Part shown: positions 47,605 through 59,940 of the stretch, one piece after another
How positions within the stretch are numbered: the stretch's first letter is position 1
How the letters are laid out: each line of letters opens with the position of its first letter
Source of the DNA: Trichosphaerium sp. ATCC 40318
Lineage: Eukaryota; Protista; Tubulinea
Assembly: GCA_038496445.1 (NCBI GenBank)
Contig: JALMLS010000455.1
Coordinates: 248,001 to 312,000 of the forward strand
Length of the DNA stretch: 64,000 nt
Reading direction: 5' to 3'
Program-made: the position numbers and the translations under genes
Notes under the pieces: generated by a model
What the model saw: only the letters and a program-made list of their open reading frames with translations
Databases searched by the model: none
Told to the model about the DNA's origin: nothing

Positions 47605-50600
47605 ATGGCAAAGAGCAAGGCTACGTGTAGCTTAGTTATCGATGCTAACAATGAATGCTCTTTGGAGTCTCTCGACGCATGCATAACGCTCACGGGTAAT
47701 TTTTAGCTCTTTTTGAGAGAATTAGCGTCCCAATTAACTAAAATATGTACCAAGGCTTTCTCGCGTATGCTAGTGTAACCATGATATGGAAGAATCCGTT
47801 AAATGAAGAAAAAGAAGGAGAGGTATGAAACGGTAGAATGCGAAACGCTAAAAACGCCTGCAGCTCGTTTTTCCGATGCCTGATGACGCCAAAGTAACGT
47901 CTTACGCGCTTGACATTGGAGGGAAACTTGTGCCAGCAACGATTGTCGAAGTACGTAGCATGCACCTGTAGACTGTCTAATGTCCTACAAGCGTGAAGTA
48001 GCAAGGGTTGCTTACGAAGTTGAAGAACGTGTAGTTGTCAAAGAAACTTCAACAAAAAACTTTGTCGCTCCTTTACAGCCAACAGCAGTTACGTTTTCTG
48101 TGGTAGAAGAGACAATTGGAAACGAGTTCAAAACAAGAATATTTCCGCTTCCAAAAAACAGTGCGTGCTTCCACTAGCTACCACACCATTATTAACTTGT
48201 ATCAGGTACCCGCACAGTTAAAATAGAGTTCCACTGGGAGATTAAGCGTGAACCAAATGAGTCAGAGCTCTCACTTCCCATAATTGTGAAAAACACAGTG
48301 AAAACATTTAATCTTAGTGTACCCTTTATCACTTGTTATTACACAACTAACAGTACATCCAGGTCATTGCAGACTCTGTCGTAGCACCAAAACTGTATAA
48401 TAACAAGAAACGAGTGCCACAGCATCGATGGACACACGAAGAGAATGCATGGCGCTATTCACACTCACTAAAAGACCATGCAATCTCAAGCGGAATATCT
48501 CTTTCTATACCAAAAATTCCCTCTGTTGTGCTTGGCAAGCATAACAACGAAGTAAGTACTTAAACATTTAACGTTACGCAGCTTTGTTTACACTACGTTC
48601 CTATTATTTTCTTAAAAACAAGATATTTACTAATATCTGTGCAGACTTTCTTTGCTATCAATGATATCCCTAATGTTCCAAAAACAGCAACAACACTTGA
48701 TTCAAAAAGTAAAATTGCAATACTATGGGATGCTAGTCTATCACGTGCAAAAGTAGATAAGAAAGAAGAATATAATGTATTGCGTGCTCTTCACAAAAAG
48801 GTAAAAATCTCACAGGCAGTTCTTACTGAGCTTCAACTAGCTGGGCGTTTGTGGAGTAGACCTATTCGTATTTAGAAATATAGTGGAGTCTCCTCAAGCA
48901 CTCAAACTTGGATCTAACCTTATAGAAACGTTAGAGAAGGTAAGTAAATGATTGATAAAACAAGAAATGAAGATTAAGAATAAACTGTAGATTAAGTATG
49001 ATGGTGGAACAATTTTAAGCGATTTTAAATGGTCTCTTGATTACAGCTGCTATCTCTTATTTACTGATGGCATGGAAACTATGACTTTAAATAACGATAA
49101 ATGTGATATACCTGTACCTATTCACGTGCTCTCTAGTAGTAAAAAAAGTAACAAAAAATTCTTGAAAGTATTAGGTACATTTACTTGTACTTCGTTCTCA
49201 ACTAACTATAATGGCTCATAGCTCGTAAAAGCGGTGGAAAGTACTTTAAATTATGGGAGCAAATGTCATCCGATTCAATTGCTAAACGAGTGTGTTCACC
49301 TCAGTTTTCTCTACTTGCAGTAACTACGAAAAATATTGACATAAAAGACAATGTGTCTAAGGTCTATCCATCAATACCCACGCCTTGTGATTCGGATATG
49401 AACATATCTGGTACAATATCAGGAACTCAGCCTATAGAACTTGTCTTGGTACGTGTTTCTAATATAACTAAGTTTTAATACAAGCTCAATAGCAATACGG
49501 TTATGGTAGTACTTGCACCTTGAAGAAAACTTACACAGTGGACCCAAAGGCAGCAATAGTATCACGTGCATGTTCAATATTCTGGGCTCAATGTAAGATA
49601 TCAGAACTCGAGTTATTTCCAGAGATAGATGGCAACGATAAAGCCATAACAGAAGTAAGTCACAACATGTCTTCGAATCAATAACAATTTATTTTAGGTT
49701 GGAAAGAGCTTTGGCATTGTAACATCTAACACTTCTCTACTTTTACTGGAGAGTTTATCTCAATATTTGAAACGTTTGTCTTCACTATTTCCTTGAAAAG
49801 ACTTGTAACTTGTAACGCTTTGAATAGATGATATCGAACCTCCTGCACAGCTTGAGGAGATCCGAAAGCAATACCTTGAAATCAAAAAAGGAAAAGACGA
49901 TCAGAAAGAAGCTGTTGAACGTGAAAGGGTATTTCTTTTCGTCTTTTATACTTTTGGTTTGTTAACAATATTTAAGCTTAATCATGTCCTTGGCATGTGG
50001 CATAGACGTTTGGCTTGGTGGAATGACGATCAAACTTGCCCAGAGTTCGTTTGATTACCTTGTCTTTTACATCAAGACACGGAAACTTACCTATTTGTAG
50101 GCATCCTGAACCGTTCTCACTCCATCATTGTACATACCCACAAGGTGTTGATACTTACTCTACAGCAGATTCTTCTTGGAGTGAATACAAGTGCGTAACT
50201 AATCATAGTAGTTTATATATGATAAAGAACTCATGAGTAGCTTTGAGCTTCAGAAAAAGGAACTGCGAACAGAAGATAGTCAACGAGTCAACATTGACAA
50301 ACACGTTCAAGATTTACGTGATTACATCACAACACTACGTGAAGCACAACAACGTACGCCCTTGTTTTTTAGCAATAGCTTTGTGTACCTCTTGAACTAA
50401 TATTTTTCCTTATGAAGGTTTTGCTGGAAGCAAGACATTACAAAAGATGACATGTGGTGCTGTTATAAGAACTGCCAAACGGCATATTGTAGTAAAACAA
50501 TACACTTTCGAAAGATTCTTGGAGAAAGCAAGGTTCCTTAGCTTGGCAGCTGTTGCAATTTCCAGCGAAGTCAGGTACATTCTGAAACTAATTTCTTCAT

Positions 50601-53600
50601 ACACAAAAGTAACGAACAATAAGTTTTCCGAATGCGGGATATGCAGCTATAAACAGAATAAAATGCACTTTTTATTCACTGGTTGAATCAGTCGTACAGC
50701 TTATTGATGAAGTCAAAGAGGTACACATATCATTTGAACGTATTAATCACCATGAAAAATTGACTTTAAACTGAAGGGGTTATCATCGGCATCAACAATA
50801 AAAGAAGTGCCCAAAATAAGTGCTGATGAGTATGAACCTTTGAGCAATTTAGTTGAGTACATGCTACTCGTAGAACAATGCCAAAACCTTGCCAATATTG
50901 TACAACTTTCTCAAAATCGCGAACTGTCTTCTCAACACGTATGTGATGTTAGTGTTTGATACTATCTACTCATCTCTCATAGGTCGAGAATCGTGATAAA
51001 AAAAAAGTGATTGATCGCTTAGTAGAGCAGCTTGAAACATTGAAACAAAAGTTGCAAATGTATGATGGCCTTAATGACAAGTGGTTAAAGGAGATGCTCT
51101 CTATAGTCAGAAACGTTACCACAATCTATAATACGTGTATGAACGAAACTACACACCACTTGCAAATGAAAGCAAATGAGCGTATGTTGAACAACATTTT
51201 TTATTCTTGTTTTTTTTCGAAAATAAACAAACCTTTCTTCCTAACCAAAATTTCCCTAGTTATGGATTTCATTGTTACCACATTGCACGTACGTATTTAT
51301 TATGTCGCCACGCTAAAAAATAACCTTAAAAACAGAAAGCTCTTACGATTAATGACGTTATGAGTGATATCACTACTTGTGTTTATCTTGTTGATGCAAC
51401 TATATCATGTGCACTACAAACCGCTGAAGGCATTTCTGTGTATATCCAATGTGATGATGTAGTAGACGCAATTTGTAACTTAATCAATACCATTGACAAG
51501 CCAATAATACCAGTTAAGCCAAAGGTGCGCACTGAACATATTTAGTTATGTTGTTTCTAAAAAAAATTTGCAACAGGCTCTGAAAGAGATACAAAGTGCT
51601 ATTGAAGCTGCTGTAAATAATCTCGAATCTTCTAATTCTAAAATCGTATCTGGAGCTTGTAATGGTTCATCTATTATTGGTAGTTCAGCCAAGGAATGTG
51701 AACTTGCTATTAAAGATATCGTGCAAGCAGTACAAGCAGCATCACAAAAGCCTGGTACATATAAACCAATAGTAGACCAAGCAAGAGCTAGTGAAATAAT
51801 AGCCAACATTACCAGTGCTACAATGATTATGGAACGTAATCAAAAAGGCATGGATGTTAACTCACAAAATTTTTCTGACAGTTGTTAGATGGAAAACAAG
51901 TAATGCAAACCGCCAAAGATATGTGTACAAATGTAAACACACTTATTGGTATTGCCAGAGATGCCTGTAAAAAACCTGGTGCAGATATACAACGTATTAT
52001 GAACGGAGCAAAGCAAACTGCTAGAGCAATACAAGCTGTTGTCACAGCTGCAAGGGGTTAGGCATATACTTTTTGCTAGTTCAACATTACTAAACTTAGT
52101 ACCACATTAGGAACCAAAAGCTTTGCTGATATACCAGCGTTGGTAACCGCTGGTCAACATATGAACAAGACTGTAACTTCTCTTGGCCGTATATTGGGCA
52201 TAGACGATACACCCAGTGGTGTTACTACCGAGGAAGCCGTAGATCCAGAAGTAGCTAAGAAGCTTGCAGTTGTAACAAAGACAGCTGCCAGGTTAATAAA
52301 CGAATTGATTCGTGCGTCATCATCAGTTTCTGCCAATTTCAGTGATTCTGCTGCTAGTAGCAAGGTATGTCATTTAGCCGTGTATTTTTTGAACACTTAT
52401 GACAACCTAACTATGTGTTAGCTCTATGAATCATCGAAGAGAGTCACTGATGTAGCAAAAGAGCTCCTTGATATTAGTAAACATCTAGATAAACCAGAAC
52501 TTCCTAGAAATGAACCAGATCCTACTCTTGATGTACTACAAGTTAAGAAGAGTGAAGATATTGAGTCTGTTGCTCTGAAGGAACTATCTAATACTCTTAA
52601 GATAGTAAAGACCTCCTCAGAGACCATATACAGCGTTAACTCCAAATATACTTCACAAAGTACCTATGATGTCCTCAAAGAAAACGTACACTTACAAAGA
52701 TATAACAACAATTAAACTCTTGTAGAATGTCAGGGATGCTGTTACCAGTGCTGTAACTGCCATAACCATTGCACTGGGAAAACTATTGATTTGTTGTGTT
52801 GATACTCAGAAGAAACGTGTTGGTAAGAATTTAGCTACTGGAGGTAAACGTTATGCAAACGATACCTTGTGGGCCAAAGGTCTTATTTCCGCTGCGAAAA
52901 AAGTTACTGGAGCTGTACAAGTACTTGTTGAGACGGCTAAGAGATACCTTGAGGTATGTTGTGTTTGACCATAAGAGTAGCTTTTTGATCTCATAATTAT
53001 TGCAACAGGAATGCTTTGATGAATCACAGCTTATTGCCGCTGCTAAGACAATATCAGCTTCAACAACTCAATTGGTATCAGCTTCTTGTGTTAAAGTAAA
53101 ATACAATTCCCTTAGCAATCAGAAAATACGTGGTGCTACTAAATCTGTTAACAAGGCGATTATAGAACTTGTTCAGGCAGCAAAAAGTAGTTGTAGCTTC
53201 CTCGAGGATCAAGATGTACAACAAGCAATAAGTGATCCTATAAATATGGAAGCGCGAACAAGAGTGTTTAATGTACAAAAACAACTAGAGCTGGCCAGAA
53301 AAGAGCTTTCTACTATTAAAGTCGAGGTATGCTTCTACTAGCTCTTACTTAACATGTAACATTTTCTCATGTTGTTTAGTGCAAAAAACCAAAAGGAAAA
53401 GGTGGTTTTGGTTTTGGTGGTAAAGGAAAGGTCAAACGCGGTGTTGGTGTTGACATTGACGCTGATGTGAAGGTAAAGAGTAAGAAACGAAACGGCCTCG
53501 GTTCCAGTGGCAAAAGAAAGGCTCCAGCGGCATCCTCATCTTCACTTGACCTTGTTGAGGGCAAATATGGTGGATCCGGTTTCGTTCTTGGTATTCAAGC

Positions 53601-56600
53601 AAAGCCACTTGGAAGTAAACCTTCAATTGAATCCCTTTTTGAGGTACAAAATTCACTTTGCCATTTTTTTTTCCACTCGTTTGCTGTATTGATAACTCGA
53701 GATGTTTTAGATGTGTGATAGAGACCAACTGAGGAATAGCACAGAAGCTGTTGATTCAATGAAAAAGAGAATAGCTGAAAGCAAGAAAGAAATAGGAACT
53801 CGTTTGAATAAGTTTGAAGAAGAGGAAAAGAGAAGATACGAGGAAGAAAAAGCAATGTGTGCTATGAAAGAGCTTATTTCTCGCCGTAAAGCTGAAGCTT
53901 GTATAAAAAGAACTAAAGAAGAAGCAATGCATCAGTATGAAGAGGAACAGAGAGCTGAAGAACAAGCTGTTGCTTCTATGCGTGAACGCATTGCTCTTCG
54001 TAAAGCTGATATACAAAGCAAGAAAAAGTTCGAGGCTCAGGCTTTAGAGAAGTACGAACGCGAAAATTCTAAGCAAAATAGGCAATCTCTTGATGATACT
54101 TCACAGCTATACAATCAGGTATGATAATACTGCAACATGGTTTTCGTTTTTTCTTACATGTTTATTCAAAGGAACGAGACAGACTTCTTTCATGCTCATG
54201 TTATGTAACGAAGGATGAAGCTATTAAACTTGCATCACTAGCACTTCAAGCTGATAAAGGTAACTATAGTCACTCAGAGAGTATAAGTGGATATATGCCA
54301 GAGATGCATAAAGCATACAAAAATGCAACTGTAGTAAGGTAAAGTTTATTTTTGTTCGAAGAATAACTATTGCTAAACTGAATCTTTTCACTTGTTTAAC
54401 TCTTCTGTTATTAAAGTGCATGGAGAAAACTTTCTGGTATATCATCTCTAGATGCCAAGAAAAGATTCATTTCTTCAATGAAGTCTTTTGGTTCAAACAC
54501 AGCGTTTCTGACTACTGTACATATCAACCTTTAGTTTTATTGTTCCTTCCTTCTTACCTTTTTTTTTTCAAAATAGAAGCCTGTTAGAGGTAAAAGAAAA
54601 CCTTTACAACAGTATATTGTTATTAGTCCGAGTGGTATAAGAATTGTATCATCTACAGGAGCTGTCACTAAAACTCGTCCTATTACACATTTAAAACGAT
54701 GGGCAGCAAACAAAGGAAGCTTTACGCTTGATTTTGGTGATTACGAAGATGACTATTTCACAGTTCAAACCCCTCATGGAGACACAATGTCACAAATTAT
54801 ATCCGGTTACATTGATAACGTATTAAAAAGTACTTACATTTTACAACCATGGGTATATACTTATGTGATAAACTAGGGCGCAAGGAAGTGCAGAAAATGG
54901 CTGAAACTGAGGCTGAGACTGCGGATATTGATGATATCCTAGATGATCTGAGTAGTTTGAGACCTTCATCAACCTCACAGAGTTTATCTCTTCCCGGCGC
55001 AGTAGTATCACGTTTAGGAACAAAGAAAAGCTCTTGGCATAACTTTAGAGATTTCGTAAAGTTAATGAACAGACAAACGTCGCACGTGATGAGTTTTACT
55101 GCTTCTGAATTGGGTACTTCAAACAAACAAATTACTATCATCCACCTTTACTGACCTGTTACAATAAAGGTACAAATGGTAGTTTAAATACAAATGGTGA
55201 TCTTGTATTGAAAGGTAGATTTGCTAGCAAGCAAATAGAACAAGTGATGAAACGTTACATGAGCACTTACGTTTATTGCAATAAGTGCAGGTCATCCAAT
55301 ACAACAATTACTAAAAAGAATCGGCTGATGACCCTTGATTGCATGTCTTGTTCAGCTTCGTACCAAGTACCATCTATAAAGACAGGTTTCTCTTCATTGT
55401 CAAGACGCAACCGTAGAAAGTCAACAGCATCAACTGAAGCGAATCCACCTGTTACCCAACCGACAACTAACATTGCTCTGCCTGTTATACAACCGAAGAA
55501 GAAGTTCTTTAAGAGTTCAAGGTCAGCAAATAAAGAAGACTTGGAACGATACAGAAAAGAGCTATTAAAAGAAACAAAGAATGATAGTGATAAAAGAAAC
55601 TTTGTTGTCATTAAAGTAAAGATGGAGAATACAATCAAAACAAAAAGATATGATCCCATGAGCCTCATTAATAATATCATCCGAGATTTTGGTGTCGGTG
55701 AGACCTTGCGTTATCAATTCTATTGATGTCAATACTGTAATACTTACTTCAATCTTTAGGCGTCAATTACGGTATTTTTGAGCATGCAACAGTAAGAGAC
55801 CATTTGCAATTTTTAATGGAATTGTATTACTAACGTTTTGGACGTAGACAAAGTGTAGAGCTAGATGGTTGAATACCAATCGCACGTTTTTATTCTATGA
55901 TATTACATCAGGGGTTAGCTTTGCTCTTACTCTTCTTTAACTTTGTTAATATCATGTTTATCTAGACAACATTGGTTTGTATGAAGAAGCACAAACCTGT
56001 TCGCATTGAGTTAATGGATTCAACTATAAAAACGGTACGTGACTTTGTTCTGTTGGTGATTTTCTTCACTTTGAAAATAATACAAATTGTTTGTGCACGT
56101 GATAATAGTGGGAATGTTTTATTCTGAACATATTTTTTATGTAGATTTTGGTGGATACTTCTTCAAGTGTAGAATCTATAGTAAAACAAATATCTGAGAA
56201 GTTAGGCATTAAACATGCTGAAGAGTTTGGTACGGTTGCAGGTTTTCTTTAAATTTTCACAAAACCACCAATCTGTTTTGTTGTGATTTTCTATTTTACA
56301 CGGTTTATTTACATTTTTAGGTCTCAAGCCACGTGATTCAGGTAATACGATTAGTAAAAAGCAAAGCTTAAACTGTCCCTTACATTTTTCTTAGACACAA
56401 CGTGGCTAAGAGCAACAGAAGATCTTTGCCAGAATAACATTGATATTACAAATACTATTACTCTTAAGTTTTCCAAGCGTTTTTTTTATTCAGACAATAC
56501 TATTGATAGAAGCGATTCAACCCAACTCCATCTTGTATACGAACAGGTATATTTTAATGCATTTCTCAGGAGTACTTCAAGCTTAGAGATAGCAATCTCT

Positions 56601-59600
56601 TCGGTTTTTTCGTTATGTTAATTTTTTCATTTTAGACGAAGTCAAGCATTCTTAACGATCAGTACCCCTGCAGTATATACGAAGCACGTGACTTTGCTTC
56701 TTTACAATTGCAAATAGATATTGGAGATTACTCTCCAGTAAAAGATACGCCAGAAAACATCAGGTAGGATTTTTACAGCGCCTAAAATAAAATGGGCAAA
56801 GCTTTTCTTCGCTTAACTCTTCATACTTATCTTCATTAGACTTGAAAATTATTTATCAGCTTCCCACCTAAAGCATAAGAATATTGCCCGTGATATATTT
56901 CAGACGCATAAGAAATATGTTGGCATGTCAGAAATCAATGCAAAATACAGATACGTACAACTTGCACGTTCATTGAAAACATACGGTATCACCTTTTTCA
57001 ATGTAACGGAACCTGTGCGTGGAAAGACAAATCCCCTTCGTCGCATGCTTGGATGTTCTCGAGATTCAATTATTCTTATGGATACTAAAACAAAGGTAAG
57101 AAATCACGTGAACAGTGACAAAAGCTTTTTTATTTAAGGGACCTCCTGTTAAGCAAACTCTTTGTGTTACTAATGTCTAACTTTTTTTTTTTACTAGACT
57201 GTAATAAAAGAGTGGAAAATAACGCAAATAAAACGATGGGCAGCAACATCATCAACGTTCACACTTGACTTTGGTGACTATGAGAGCGATTACATCACAT
57301 ACCAAACAACAGAAGGAGACAGTATTTCTCAGTTAATAGCTGGATACATTGACATAATGCTCAAGGTTAGAAAAGACGTAGGATCGCAAATGACGGAAGA
57401 AGATGCTAGTGTTGATAGCAAAGAAAGTGTGGCATTTGTACGTGTTTTTTTTTCTTTAATCAACAACCAAAGCGCTAACTCTGTTGCTTCTCATTGATAT
57501 GTCTAGTCTTCTGGCACGGAAGCACTGCTTTTATCAATGCCTTCAGCTTCTCTGCACAACCAAGATGAGGTTAAACTTCAACATCCCAAACAAATCAATA
57601 GAGATAAAGACAATGACGATGTCGATTTAAAAATGCCATGCCTTCTTTTTGACAGTGCTCTCTCTAACCTTCGGTTAGTACAAGATACAAAGTTATTATC
57701 GTTCAACACTTACTTTATGACACTAGTGCTAATATTAACAACAAAGACTTTATTGTTAAGTACAGCAGGGAATGCTTCAAAAAATATAGTAACATTGTGC
57801 GAGTTGCAAAAAACCTGGTAAAGCCTGACGCACCGAACAGTGAGCGTATCAAAAAGAATTTAGTAGTATCTACAAATTTCTTAAAGAAGCTCTTATCTGC
57901 CGCAAAGGCTGCCTGTTCAAAGCCTAATGATCCGAAGAACCAACAAGAGTTATTGGATGCTATAAAAGCCAGTCAAGCTGCTGTGCAGGTTCGTAGTACT
58001 TTTCTTTGTTGGCTTCTTATGTTTTGTTCAAATAGACACTTGTTGATGAAAGTAAAGAGCAACCTTCGATTCTTTTGGTAAAGCTTGAATCTAAGATAGA
58101 TGAATACGAAGAAGAGCAATATACAGAGCCAAGTACGAAACAAAGTTGGTTTTGGTTTTTTTCAAAGTTTTCTTTTTTATGTGTAAGCTGTTAATATCCA
58201 TGTGATGATATCCTTACACTATTTTATTTCTACAAGTAATCTAAAGCAAAACAACAGTATCTTCGAACATTCTTGAACTTGGATTTGTCAAAAAAAGACC
58301 AACTCTGAGTTTTTTCTTTTCAGATTTTTGTTGACTTTGCACTGAGTCCCTGGGGTTTTTTTAGTTTGGCCCATTGAAGGCGATAAGTTATTATTGTTCG
58401 TTCTTATTTTAGTAGTTACAATGAGTTTGAAGGATTGGTGTACAAATGAGTTATACATGGAAAAAATTACTAGTGAATCTTTACTTGATAGCAAGTATGA
58501 TATTTATTTTAAGTCACGTGACGAAAATATTACATCAATGCACTTTTTCATGGACGTCGCATCTCACTTTTTCACGTTGAACTCAATAAAACGTACGCAG
58601 TCACCGTAGAATTGGCGTTTTTCCGAAAAAAACATTGTTTGATATTATTTAGGCTCTTCTGATCTTGCTATGCGCATTCTATCGAATATTTCTGAACTTC
58701 AACCTGAAGATCCCTCTTCTCTTAGATTGTTTGCTTACTTTCTTCAATACCAGACGTCTATTGGTACTTAGTTCTTTCAACAAAACGTTGTTCAGTTTTC
58801 GAGTTATTGTTCAAGTCGAAACAGTTACAGGCCTGAACTAATCCAACGTTTAGCAATGTCTGAACAAGATATTACCAAAGCTTCTTTGTTTAATAACTGC
58901 GCTATTAAGATGTTAAAGAGGATAAAGAAACTAAGACCAGAAGAACCACAAGTATGCAAAGAAAACCTGTAAAACAAAATTAATCAGAAACTCACTTGTT
59001 CTTAGTCGTTCCTTGATTTGGCTGTTTCTCTTGAAACCTCCGCTTCAATACTACGAAAAGAAGTCAAAGGTGTTAATGATGATTTACGTGCACGTGTATC
59101 GCCTATTTATGGAGAAGCAATATCACTTCTAAAAAAGGTTGTTGTTAACAAATGGGACGCGAGATTCGATCAAATACAAGTCACAGCATTGACCGAAGTA
59201 AGTTAAGAAAAATATGAGAATGACAAACAAGTTCTACGAGAGCTCACGAAATTTTTTAGATGAATAAAATCCTTGGTATTCTTGATCACTTGGATATACG
59301 CAATGATGTCGCTTTGTCCATTGGTACGTAGTTTGAATCATGTTGAGGAACAGAAGCAAAAAAAAATTAACAGTTTTTTTCTTTGTTAGAGTCTTTGTAT
59401 GTTGCAAACATTGATGTCGATCTTCGGATTGTCATGTATTGGGATACTGATAAAACAGATATTGATTTACAAATAACTCAACCAGACGGAGAAAAGTGTT
59501 ACAGCTTCAACAATAAGGTACCCAAGCCAACTTATTTTCAAAAGTGAAAAAACAATTTTTTTTTTGTTTCACCAGCAGCACTCACTCATTTGATCTTTAG

Positions 59601-59940
59601 ACAAAATGTGGCGGTATGATGTCACGAGACTTTACTTACGGATATGGACCTCAAGAATACCTACTTCGTGAAGCGCCAGATGGAGAATTCAATGTACGTC
59701 ACAAAGAATAACACCTCCCAAAAAACCCCAAAAATACAACTTAATTCAGTCTAACTGTATGTTAAGGTCGACGTGTCATTATTCTCAAACATACAAAACC
59801 CAAAACCAGTGAGTGTTTTTGTTAAGATAATATCAAACTTTGGAAGACCAGGAAAGGAAAAAGAATGGTATTCTTTTGCACGACTATCAAAACCAAAAGA
59901 AAAAATAACGCTTGCTACTTTTACAAGAAAACTTGTGTAA
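47605..59940 (+). CDS. Giant chimeric protein: VIT-vWA-[talin rod/I-LWEQ, coiled coil, FERM F2F3, eIF2beta domain, FERM F0-F3]-TPR-DUF2135
   Basis: VIT ([21 protein letters not shown]; [12 protein letters not shown]), vWA-like ([22 protein letters not shown]), I/LWEQ ([10 protein letters not shown]), FERM twice (KRWAA...FTLDFGDYE), eIF2beta (CNKCRS...CMSC) and C-terminal LRPEEPQ / [17 protein letters not shown] / [13 protein letters not shown]. Splice phases were consistent at every inter-domain junction I traced. Confidence 0.7.
52540..53326 (+). other. I/LWEQ (THATCH) actin-binding domain within the chimera
   Basis: [71 protein letters not shown]. Confidence 0.88.
54980..55400 (+). other. 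eIF2beta (eIF-5_eIF-2B family) core and C2-C2 zinc finger within the chimera
   Basis: [35 protein letters not shown]|[44 protein letters not shown]...LDCMSC...SIKTGF matches the eIF2beta pattern along its length. Confidence 0.9.
55600..57370 (+). other. Complete talin head (F0-F1-F2-F3 FERM) within the chimera
   Basis: [109 protein letters not shown]. Confidence 0.92.

Follow-up and report, generated by a model that had tools for sequence, protein, structure and literature searches.

A predicted gene of Trichosphaerium sp. with an eIF2β core and zinc-binding domain between two talin-type FERM modules

In the protist Trichosphaerium sp. ATCC 40318 (Tubulinea) we found a predicted gene in which a domain of translation initiation factor eIF2β, consisting of the helix-turn-helix core and the zinc-binding domain, is located between two talin-type FERM modules. 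The gene lies in a stretch of 64,000 nucleotides (C3:248001-312000, GenBank contig JALMLS010000455.1), which was analysed as a whole and is called the window in the following. The reading we favour, with a probability of roughly 55%, is that of a lineage-specific chimeric gene that has been maintained by selection and in which the eIF2β core and zinc-binding domain, devoid of their known anchors, would serve as a putative docking module. An earlier note on this DNA had described an intact eIF2β zinc-binding domain sandwiched between two FERM domains, and this description holds, since the domain is matched by PF01873 and talin-type FERM modules were recognised by Pfam on either side.

The window is part of an intron-rich assembly of 70 Mb in 642 contigs with a GC content of about 36%. 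Labels such as C1, C3, C36, C40 or C192 denote contigs of this assembly, and genes referred to as own genes are from the same genome. Every homology search and the structure prediction were run with single exons.

A complete eIF2β domain

A complete IF2B/IF5 domain (PF01873) is encoded at 54975-55390 and interrupted by one phase-1 intron of 56 nucleotides (Table 1). In the Pfam search the exon upstream of this intron (54879-55112) matched profile positions 8-53 with 25.6 bits, and the exon downstream of it (55172-55696) matched positions 55-116 with 61.2 bits (E 1.1e-16; cut-off 27 bits). The two pieces are colinear across the intron and their summed score is about 87 bits. The first exon was also recognised, with 46 bits, by a hidden Markov model (HMM) of the N-terminal part of eIF2β built from 89 eIF2β references. 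Among the solved structures in the PDB, the closest match for the second piece was human eIF2β (residues 246-324, E 5e-19), with yeast SUI3 next. A search against 1.84 billion representative sequences returned 1021 matches, of which the best 150 were all ordinary eIF2β proteins, aligned to query residues 1-85 with 40-51% identity. An origin of the module from eIF5 was considered and is ruled out, since the best matches are all eIF2β.

All four cysteines of the zinc-binding domain are kept, just as they had been read in the earlier note. Their codons start at 55277, 55286, 55340 and 55349 (CNKC…CMSC, 55277-55351), and the four columns are invariant in an alignment of 32 sequences. With this alignment AlphaFold2 predicted the expected helix and a three-stranded zinc ribbon, the predicted local distance difference test (pLDDT) values being 90-96 at residues 21-70. 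For the linker that follows (55391-55585), pLDDT was about 50-60 except for a helix at residues 121-136.

Retained and lost parts of eIF2β

The lysine boxes (K-boxes) of eIF2β bind eIF5 and eIF2B (eIF2Bε). Upstream of the module described here K-boxes are absent, and the own canonical eIF2β on C1 has lysine runs. The absence of lysine boxes had been reported in the earlier note and is borne out by what precedes the module, namely an exon for an IRS-type PTB domain (talin F3) and then an acidic linker. In yeast eIF2β, the α1 helix (residues 128-143) is followed by the helix-turn-helix part (155-234) and by the zinc-binding domain (235-270) with its T-, R- and S-loops; the α1 helix anchors eIF2β on eIF2γ, and a second contact with eIF2γ is made by the zinc-binding domain independently of α1 (PMC11230868). 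The first exon of the module matches the HMM of the eIF2β N-terminal part only at nodes 62-109, which represent the core. Nodes 37-55, which represent the α1 helix (…dytYdeLLeRvf…), are matched in the three own eIF2β-type genes on C1, C36 and C3 (C3:384568, hereafter C3b) and are unmatched in the window copy. The motif Y-x-E-L-L-x-R-F (Y-S-E-L-L-x-R-F-F in the yeast helix) is missing at 54877-54974, and an acidic stretch is found in its place.

To describe the conservation of the remaining part, we used the 41 columns in which one residue is present in at least 80% of the 89 eIF2β references. The window copy keeps 33 of them, the canonical C1 copy 31, C3b 28 and the C36 paralog 26. Published residue roles (PMC11230868) were transferred via an alignment to yeast eIF2β 201-284. 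The equivalents of F217 and Q221 in the core, of N252 and R253 in the R-loop of the zinc-binding domain and of L254 are kept (F17, Q21, N50 and R51 in the module). The equivalent of S264 is an alanine, which is likewise found in the own canonical C1 copy. Judged from these comparisons, both known anchors, the K-boxes and α1, are gone and the globular core and zinc-binding domain are unusually well kept. Since K-boxes and α1 are lost, the module would not function as a regular subunit of eIF2, and it is unlikely to act simply as a decoy for eIF2γ. Of the proposal in the earlier note, a co-opted translation-initiation domain that might also act as a decoy, the co-option is thus favoured by a copy that is old, open, splice-compatible and well conserved, and the decoy is weakened by the loss of K-boxes and α1.

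The degree of conservation also bears on the possibility that the gene is real and expressed, with an eIF2β module that is an inert folded spacer between the FERM modules and has no ligand. Talin heads of this genome have often been involved in domain shuffling, as seen from a PH domain next to a talin F0 on C192 and from six talin-type F3 loci, and the other long PF01873 proteins examined are likewise joined to unrelated domains (Rhodanese, SAP or LRR, not FERM). A spacer of this kind would fit such a background. However, the retention of 33 of 41 columns at about 40% identity, including surface residues that contact tRNA and eIF2γ, exceeds what would be expected if only the fold had to be maintained. 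We therefore consider an inert spacer unlikely, and prefer a module that is kept for binding.

Continuity of the coding sequence

The different modules probably belong to a single coding sequence (CDS), which would run from the coiled coil (53711) through the upstream F2-F3 and the eIF2β module to the downstream F0-F3. With 205 open codons, the frame at 55109-55723 ranks fifth in length among the 7253 stop-to-stop segments of the window; given the 0.057 stops per codon observed in the window, an open frame of this length has a P of about 6e-6. The 92 codons past the eIF2β homology are free of stops in this frame, compared with 3 and 12 stops when read in the two alternative frames. A codon log-odds score derived from 63 long open reading frames (ORFs) of the own genome is positive, in the frame proposed here, for either linker and for the presumed N-terminal half of F0, with values similar to those of confirmed exons. 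On the upstream side, the phase 1 end of the F3 exon at 54829 fits the phase 1 start of the eIF2β exon at 54877, and the intron between them uses the same donor, GTACTT, as the following intron. All introns of the model are 47-110 nucleotides long, have GT..AG borders and preserve the frame, and the domain-coding exons contain neither a stop nor a frameshift, despite their old divergence.

Alternatively, the locus might not encode one protein at all. It could consist of a talin fragment, a K-box-less eIF2β paralog starting at the ATG at 54898 and a talin head, or it could be an untranscribed mosaic of exons. The ATG at 54898 is indeed located in an A-rich context, and retention of the 47-nucleotide intron would bring the F3 frame to a stop at 54874; in addition, the N-terminal half of F0 is degraded, the talin order is permuted and there is an extra F2-F3, and a look-up of sequencing runs for 52500-58400 yielded no RNA run. 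On the other hand, the stop at 54874 and this first ATG of the eIF2β exon are only 22 nucleotides apart, which is too little for two independent genes, and a talin head encoded on its own would lack a start codon ahead of its first β-strand. The intact domain-coding exons and the 205 open codons speak against separate or untranscribed pieces as well. We regard this explanation as somewhat less likely still than an inert spacer, and the single CDS is the model used in the following. A word-based search of a collection of 5.8 billion sequences for a protein fragment near-identical to the fused exon found none.

The junction with talin F0

The earlier note had stated that the zinc-binding domain exon runs straight into talin F0 without an intron or stop, so that the fusion would not depend on splice calls. 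The first half of this statement is correct as far as the frame is concerned, which is open and has neither stop nor intron, but the segment after SIKTGF was not identified as F0 by HMM. For 55586-55697 Pfam gave no match to FERM_f0 even at E<=10, no match at E<=10 was found in the PDB, and a BLAST comparison with own talin F0 was not significant (E 1.6). An HMM made from the N-terminal halves of three own talin F0 domains placed the 55586-55697 ORF first among 2047 open segments of the window, with an E value of 0.61.

The first significant evidence for F0 comes from the following exons, namely the C-terminal half of F0 and the exon at the F0/F1 border (55848-55913 and 55966-56034; Table 1). 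For the former, FERM_f0 (PF16511) was matched at positions 56-73 with an E value of 0.059. The intron positions after …DITSG and …STIKT are common to the own talin-like gene on C192. Because F0 becomes significant only in these exons, the fusion to the talin head depends on the splices 55698/55760 and 55792/55848, and its claimed independence of splice calls was not borne out.

We infer that 55586-55697 is a degraded N-terminal half of F0, since it lines up in order with the remaining parts of F0 and shows, by eye, the pattern K-T-x-x-[FY]-[DE]-P, since a helix is predicted at the position of the F0 helix, and since there is no better candidate in the window.

Origin of the two parts

Three free-standing eIF2β-type genes were found in the own genome, at C1:471003-471474, C36:18147-18479 and from C3:384568-384711 on. 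The gene on C1 is canonical-looking and has lysine runs, so that a separate canonical eIF2β gene, presupposed in the earlier note, does exist; C3b is located about 80 kb downstream of the window copy. Both the C1 gene and C3b contain an intron at the same place and in the same phase as the window copy (GAA-TTG/CTC-G/GT…AG/GT), and one own eIF2β paralog has no intron at the ELG site. With the C1 copy, its closest own paralog, the module shares 39-44% identity; the nonsynonymous divergence (dN) is 0.64 and the synonymous divergence (dS) is saturated. For comparison, the closest proteins to canonical C1 eIF2β come from amoebozoan transcriptomes, a EukProt Trinity protein being 64% and a protein of Nolandella sp. 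59% identical.

From these data the module is, as far as gene structure and divergence can tell, an old duplicate of an intron-containing eIF2β gene. The shared position and phase of the intron argue that it was derived from genomic DNA and not from mRNA. A retrocopy is ruled out by the presence of the parental intron, and a recent duplication of the canonical gene is ruled out by the identity of 39-44%.

The talin part has a different history. The downstream F3 (57198-57350) and the linker following it are about 82% identical to own talin C40, and the divergence grows toward the junction; the upstream F3 is 62% identical to the F3 of the same talin. Thus, the duplication that gave rise to the talin head seems to be far more recent than those behind the eIF2β module and the upstream F2-F3. 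Possibly, the stop codon of the last eIF2β exon was lost, and reading continued through the spacer into the first exon of a talin-head gene. Such a scenario would account for the missing intron between SIKTGF and F0, for the basic stretch of low complexity, about 65 residues long, that links them and for the degradation of the N-terminal half of F0.

A further talin head joined to a foreign domain was observed on C192 (60382-63501, minus strand), where a PH domain (PF00169, E 1.4e-6) precedes a talin F0 (PF16511, E 2e-6) in the same orientation at a distance of about 1 kb. The intron positions in this F0 match those of the talin head in the window. Altogether, the genome has six talin-type F3 loci.

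Besides the eIF2β-type genes, three eIF5-like loci were found (C57, C7 and C151), and the IF2B/IF5 family is unusually large for one protist. The C-terminal domain of eIF2γ (PF09173) is present at two loci (C35:99553-99795 and C40:227455-227727), and both eIF2γ genes are split into many exons; eIF2γ may thus be duplicated as well. The extra loci for eIF2β, eIF2γ and eIF5 are a hint of a remodelled eIF2 system in this organism.

Features of the locus

The exons, introns and domains of the model are compiled in Table 1.

Table 1. Features of the eIF2β-FERM locus. Positions are those of the window.
Feature	Position	Strand	Evidence
I/LWEQ (talin C-terminal actin-binding) domain	52726..53338	+	PF01608 E 8.5e-7 and 2.1e-16
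Glu/Lys-rich coiled-coil ORF	53711..54121	+	open frame; without Pfam family
Upstream talin-type F2 (FERM_M), two or three small exons, borders not fixed	54121..54531	+	PF00373 on 54121-54339, E 6.2e-7; 54415-54531 aligned by eye to own talin F2 end
Upstream talin-type F3 exon (IRS-type PTB), phase 1 end	54577..54829	+	PF02174 E 3.8e-16
Intron, 47 nucleotides, GTACTT…TAG, phase 1	54830..54876	+	sole GT..AG pair linking the F3 and eIF2β frames
Acidic linker, at the place of the eIF2β α1 helix	54877..54974	+	no in-frame stop; codon log-odds +0.38
eIF2β helix-turn-helix core, N-terminal part (RQTSHVMSF…ELG)	54975..55113	+	PF01873 positions 8-53
Intron, 56 nucleotides, phase 1, inside the Gly codon of ELG/T	55114..55169	+	GT..AG
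eIF2β core, C-terminal part, and C2-C2 zinc-binding domain, ends SIKTGF	55170..55390	+	PF01873 positions 55-116
Basic linker, mostly low-confidence, one predicted helix	55391..55585	+	open frame; codon log-odds +0.19
Presumed N-terminal half of talin F0, in the zinc-binding domain exon	55586..55697	+	weak; codon log-odds +0.23
Introns around the F0 mini-exon	55698-55759 (62 nucleotides, phase 1); 55792-55847 (56 nucleotides, phase 0, TACTAAC)	+	
F0 mini-exon, 32 nucleotides	55760..55791	+	by-eye match to own talin …ADHGLFQPAA…
F0 C-terminal half	55848..55913	+	BLASTP E 3e-8 vs own talin C55 F0 residues 63-84
Intron	55914-55965	+	52 nucleotides, GT..AG, frame-preserving
F0 end and F1 start, two exons	55966-56034 and 56145-56231	+	BLASTP E 3e-7 vs own talin; RA_2 E 0.031
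Downstream talin F2 (FERM_M) and F3 (IRS-type PTB)	56636..57350	+	PF00373 E 3.3e-5 and 1.4e-10; PF02174 E 8.4e-15

The end of the coiled-coil ORF resembles, by eye, the first helix of F2 in own talin C40. Between the I/LWEQ domain and the coiled coil a Lys/Gly-rich frame on the plus strand is open for 112 codons (53380-53715) and has no Pfam match. Given this frame, the part with the I/LWEQ domain and the FERM-eIF2β part may form one CDS. The I/LWEQ domain precedes the two FERM modules, all of them being on the plus strand, so that the order known from talin (head, rod, C-terminal I/LWEQ) is permuted.

Antisense to the exon with the eIF2β part and the linker there is a minus-strand ORF with an ATG (55273-55680, 135 amino acids), the reverse frame being stop-free across the linker; it was taken as a hydrophobic-looking shadow ORF. 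Farther away, at 47852-47968 and 59371-59940 on the plus strand, an exon-wise Pfam search at E<=0.01 gave no match to vWA or DUF2135, and only a weak VIT match was found (E 4e-4).

Discussion

The module shares with eIF2β (SUI3, EIF2S2) the PF01873 helix-turn-helix core and the C2-C2 zinc-binding domain, and the intron after ELG is shared with own eIF2β. In contrast to the module, which is placed inside a FERM/talin protein, eIF2β has a K-box tail and the α1 motif and carries the domain at the C-terminus of a protein of 25-45 kDa. Ordinary eIF2β proteins score 110-145 bits with the Pfam model, compared with the summed score of about 87 bits for the module. The N-terminal domain of eIF5 belongs to the same family and has the same fold, and it provides a precedent for a domain of this type acting on the initiation complex outside eIF2. 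Unlike eIF5, the module has neither the N-terminal Arg-finger segment nor a W2 domain.

The remainder of the predicted protein resembles talin (TLN1 and amoebozoan talins) in its F0-F1-F2-F3 head with an IRS-type PTB as F3, in the I/LWEQ domain and in the rod-like helical bundles. It differs from talin in the extra F2-F3 after the coiled coil, in the foreign eIF2β module between the FERM modules and in the degraded N-terminal half of F0. FERM proteins with a foreign domain are known, such as kindlin with a PH domain in F2 and Dictyostelium talin B with a C-terminal villin headpiece. These inserted domains bind lipid or actin, and we know of none that comes from the translation apparatus. In the search against the 1.84 billion representatives, which include amoebozoan transcriptomes such as that of Nolandella, no protein among the best 150 of the 1021 matches was similar beyond the eIF2β part, and a literature search found no paper that joins talin and eIF2β in one protein. 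The fusion would be surprising to a specialist, yet it rests on one genome and a partly inferred gene model.

How could the module function in such a protein? In the chimeric gene that we favour, selection would keep it for docking in the interior of a large cortical scaffold, as a domain stabilised by zinc, and it would no longer serve as an eIF2 subunit. The other parts of the scaffold would be the actin-binding I/LWEQ domain, the coiled coil and the two FERM/PTB membrane modules. The likeliest ligand would be one that the eIF2β core and zinc-binding domain contact during initiation, namely RNA, initiator tRNA or a GTPase of the eIF2γ type, bound at its nucleotide face. With both anchors gone, such binding would be expected to be weak.

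Several points weigh against this interpretation. The gene model was read from the DNA sequence alone. The N-terminal half of F0, about 37 residues, is statistically unrecognisable by Pfam, PDB, BLAST and the own-talin HMM, and in the zinc-binding domain the equivalent of T238, a nucleotide-contacting residue in yeast, is a lysine. Since dS is saturated, dN/dS is not computable for the comparison with the canonical copy. Furthermore, the locus is a singleton without an orthologue, and selection is read solely from the conserved residues and the open frame.

A more specific proposal, which goes back to the earlier note, that the module is a tether or regulator of translation which engages eIF2γ (or a paralog), Met-tRNAi, eIF1/eIF1A or the 40S subunit at the cortex and thereby places or sequesters initiation machinery at talin-type adhesion or cortex sites, is the least likely of the three alternatives: the family-invariant surface residues of the core and the R-loop are kept, the contact of the zinc-binding domain with eIF2γ is independent of α1 (PMC11230868) and the genome has extra eIF2β, eIF5-like and eIF2γ loci, but both known high-affinity anchors are gone and the T238 equivalent is a lysine. 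In its strongest form, a talin-type scaffold would dock eIF2γ·GTP·Met-tRNAi or the 43S complex at membrane-actin sites via a working eIF2β core, which we consider very doubtful. If it were true, a single protein of this organism would physically connect cell adhesion with the initiation of translation, maybe as part of a wider remodelling of eIF2.

Returning to the chimeric gene with its putative docking module, the meaning of the locus depends on its expression. If the gene is silent, the locus simply illustrates how heavily exons have been shuffled in this genome. Apart from eIF2β and eIF5, essentially no proteins are known to contain the IF2B/IF5 fold, and here its core and zinc finger would have persisted over a long period in the absence of the two elements that tie eIF2β to eIF5/eIF2B and eIF2γ. 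If expressed, the protein would be a natural separation-of-function construct, showing what the eIF2β core binds alone. Local translation at adhesions has long been observed, and an expressed protein of this kind would be a candidate for a direct link between adhesion or cortex scaffolds and the initiation machinery.

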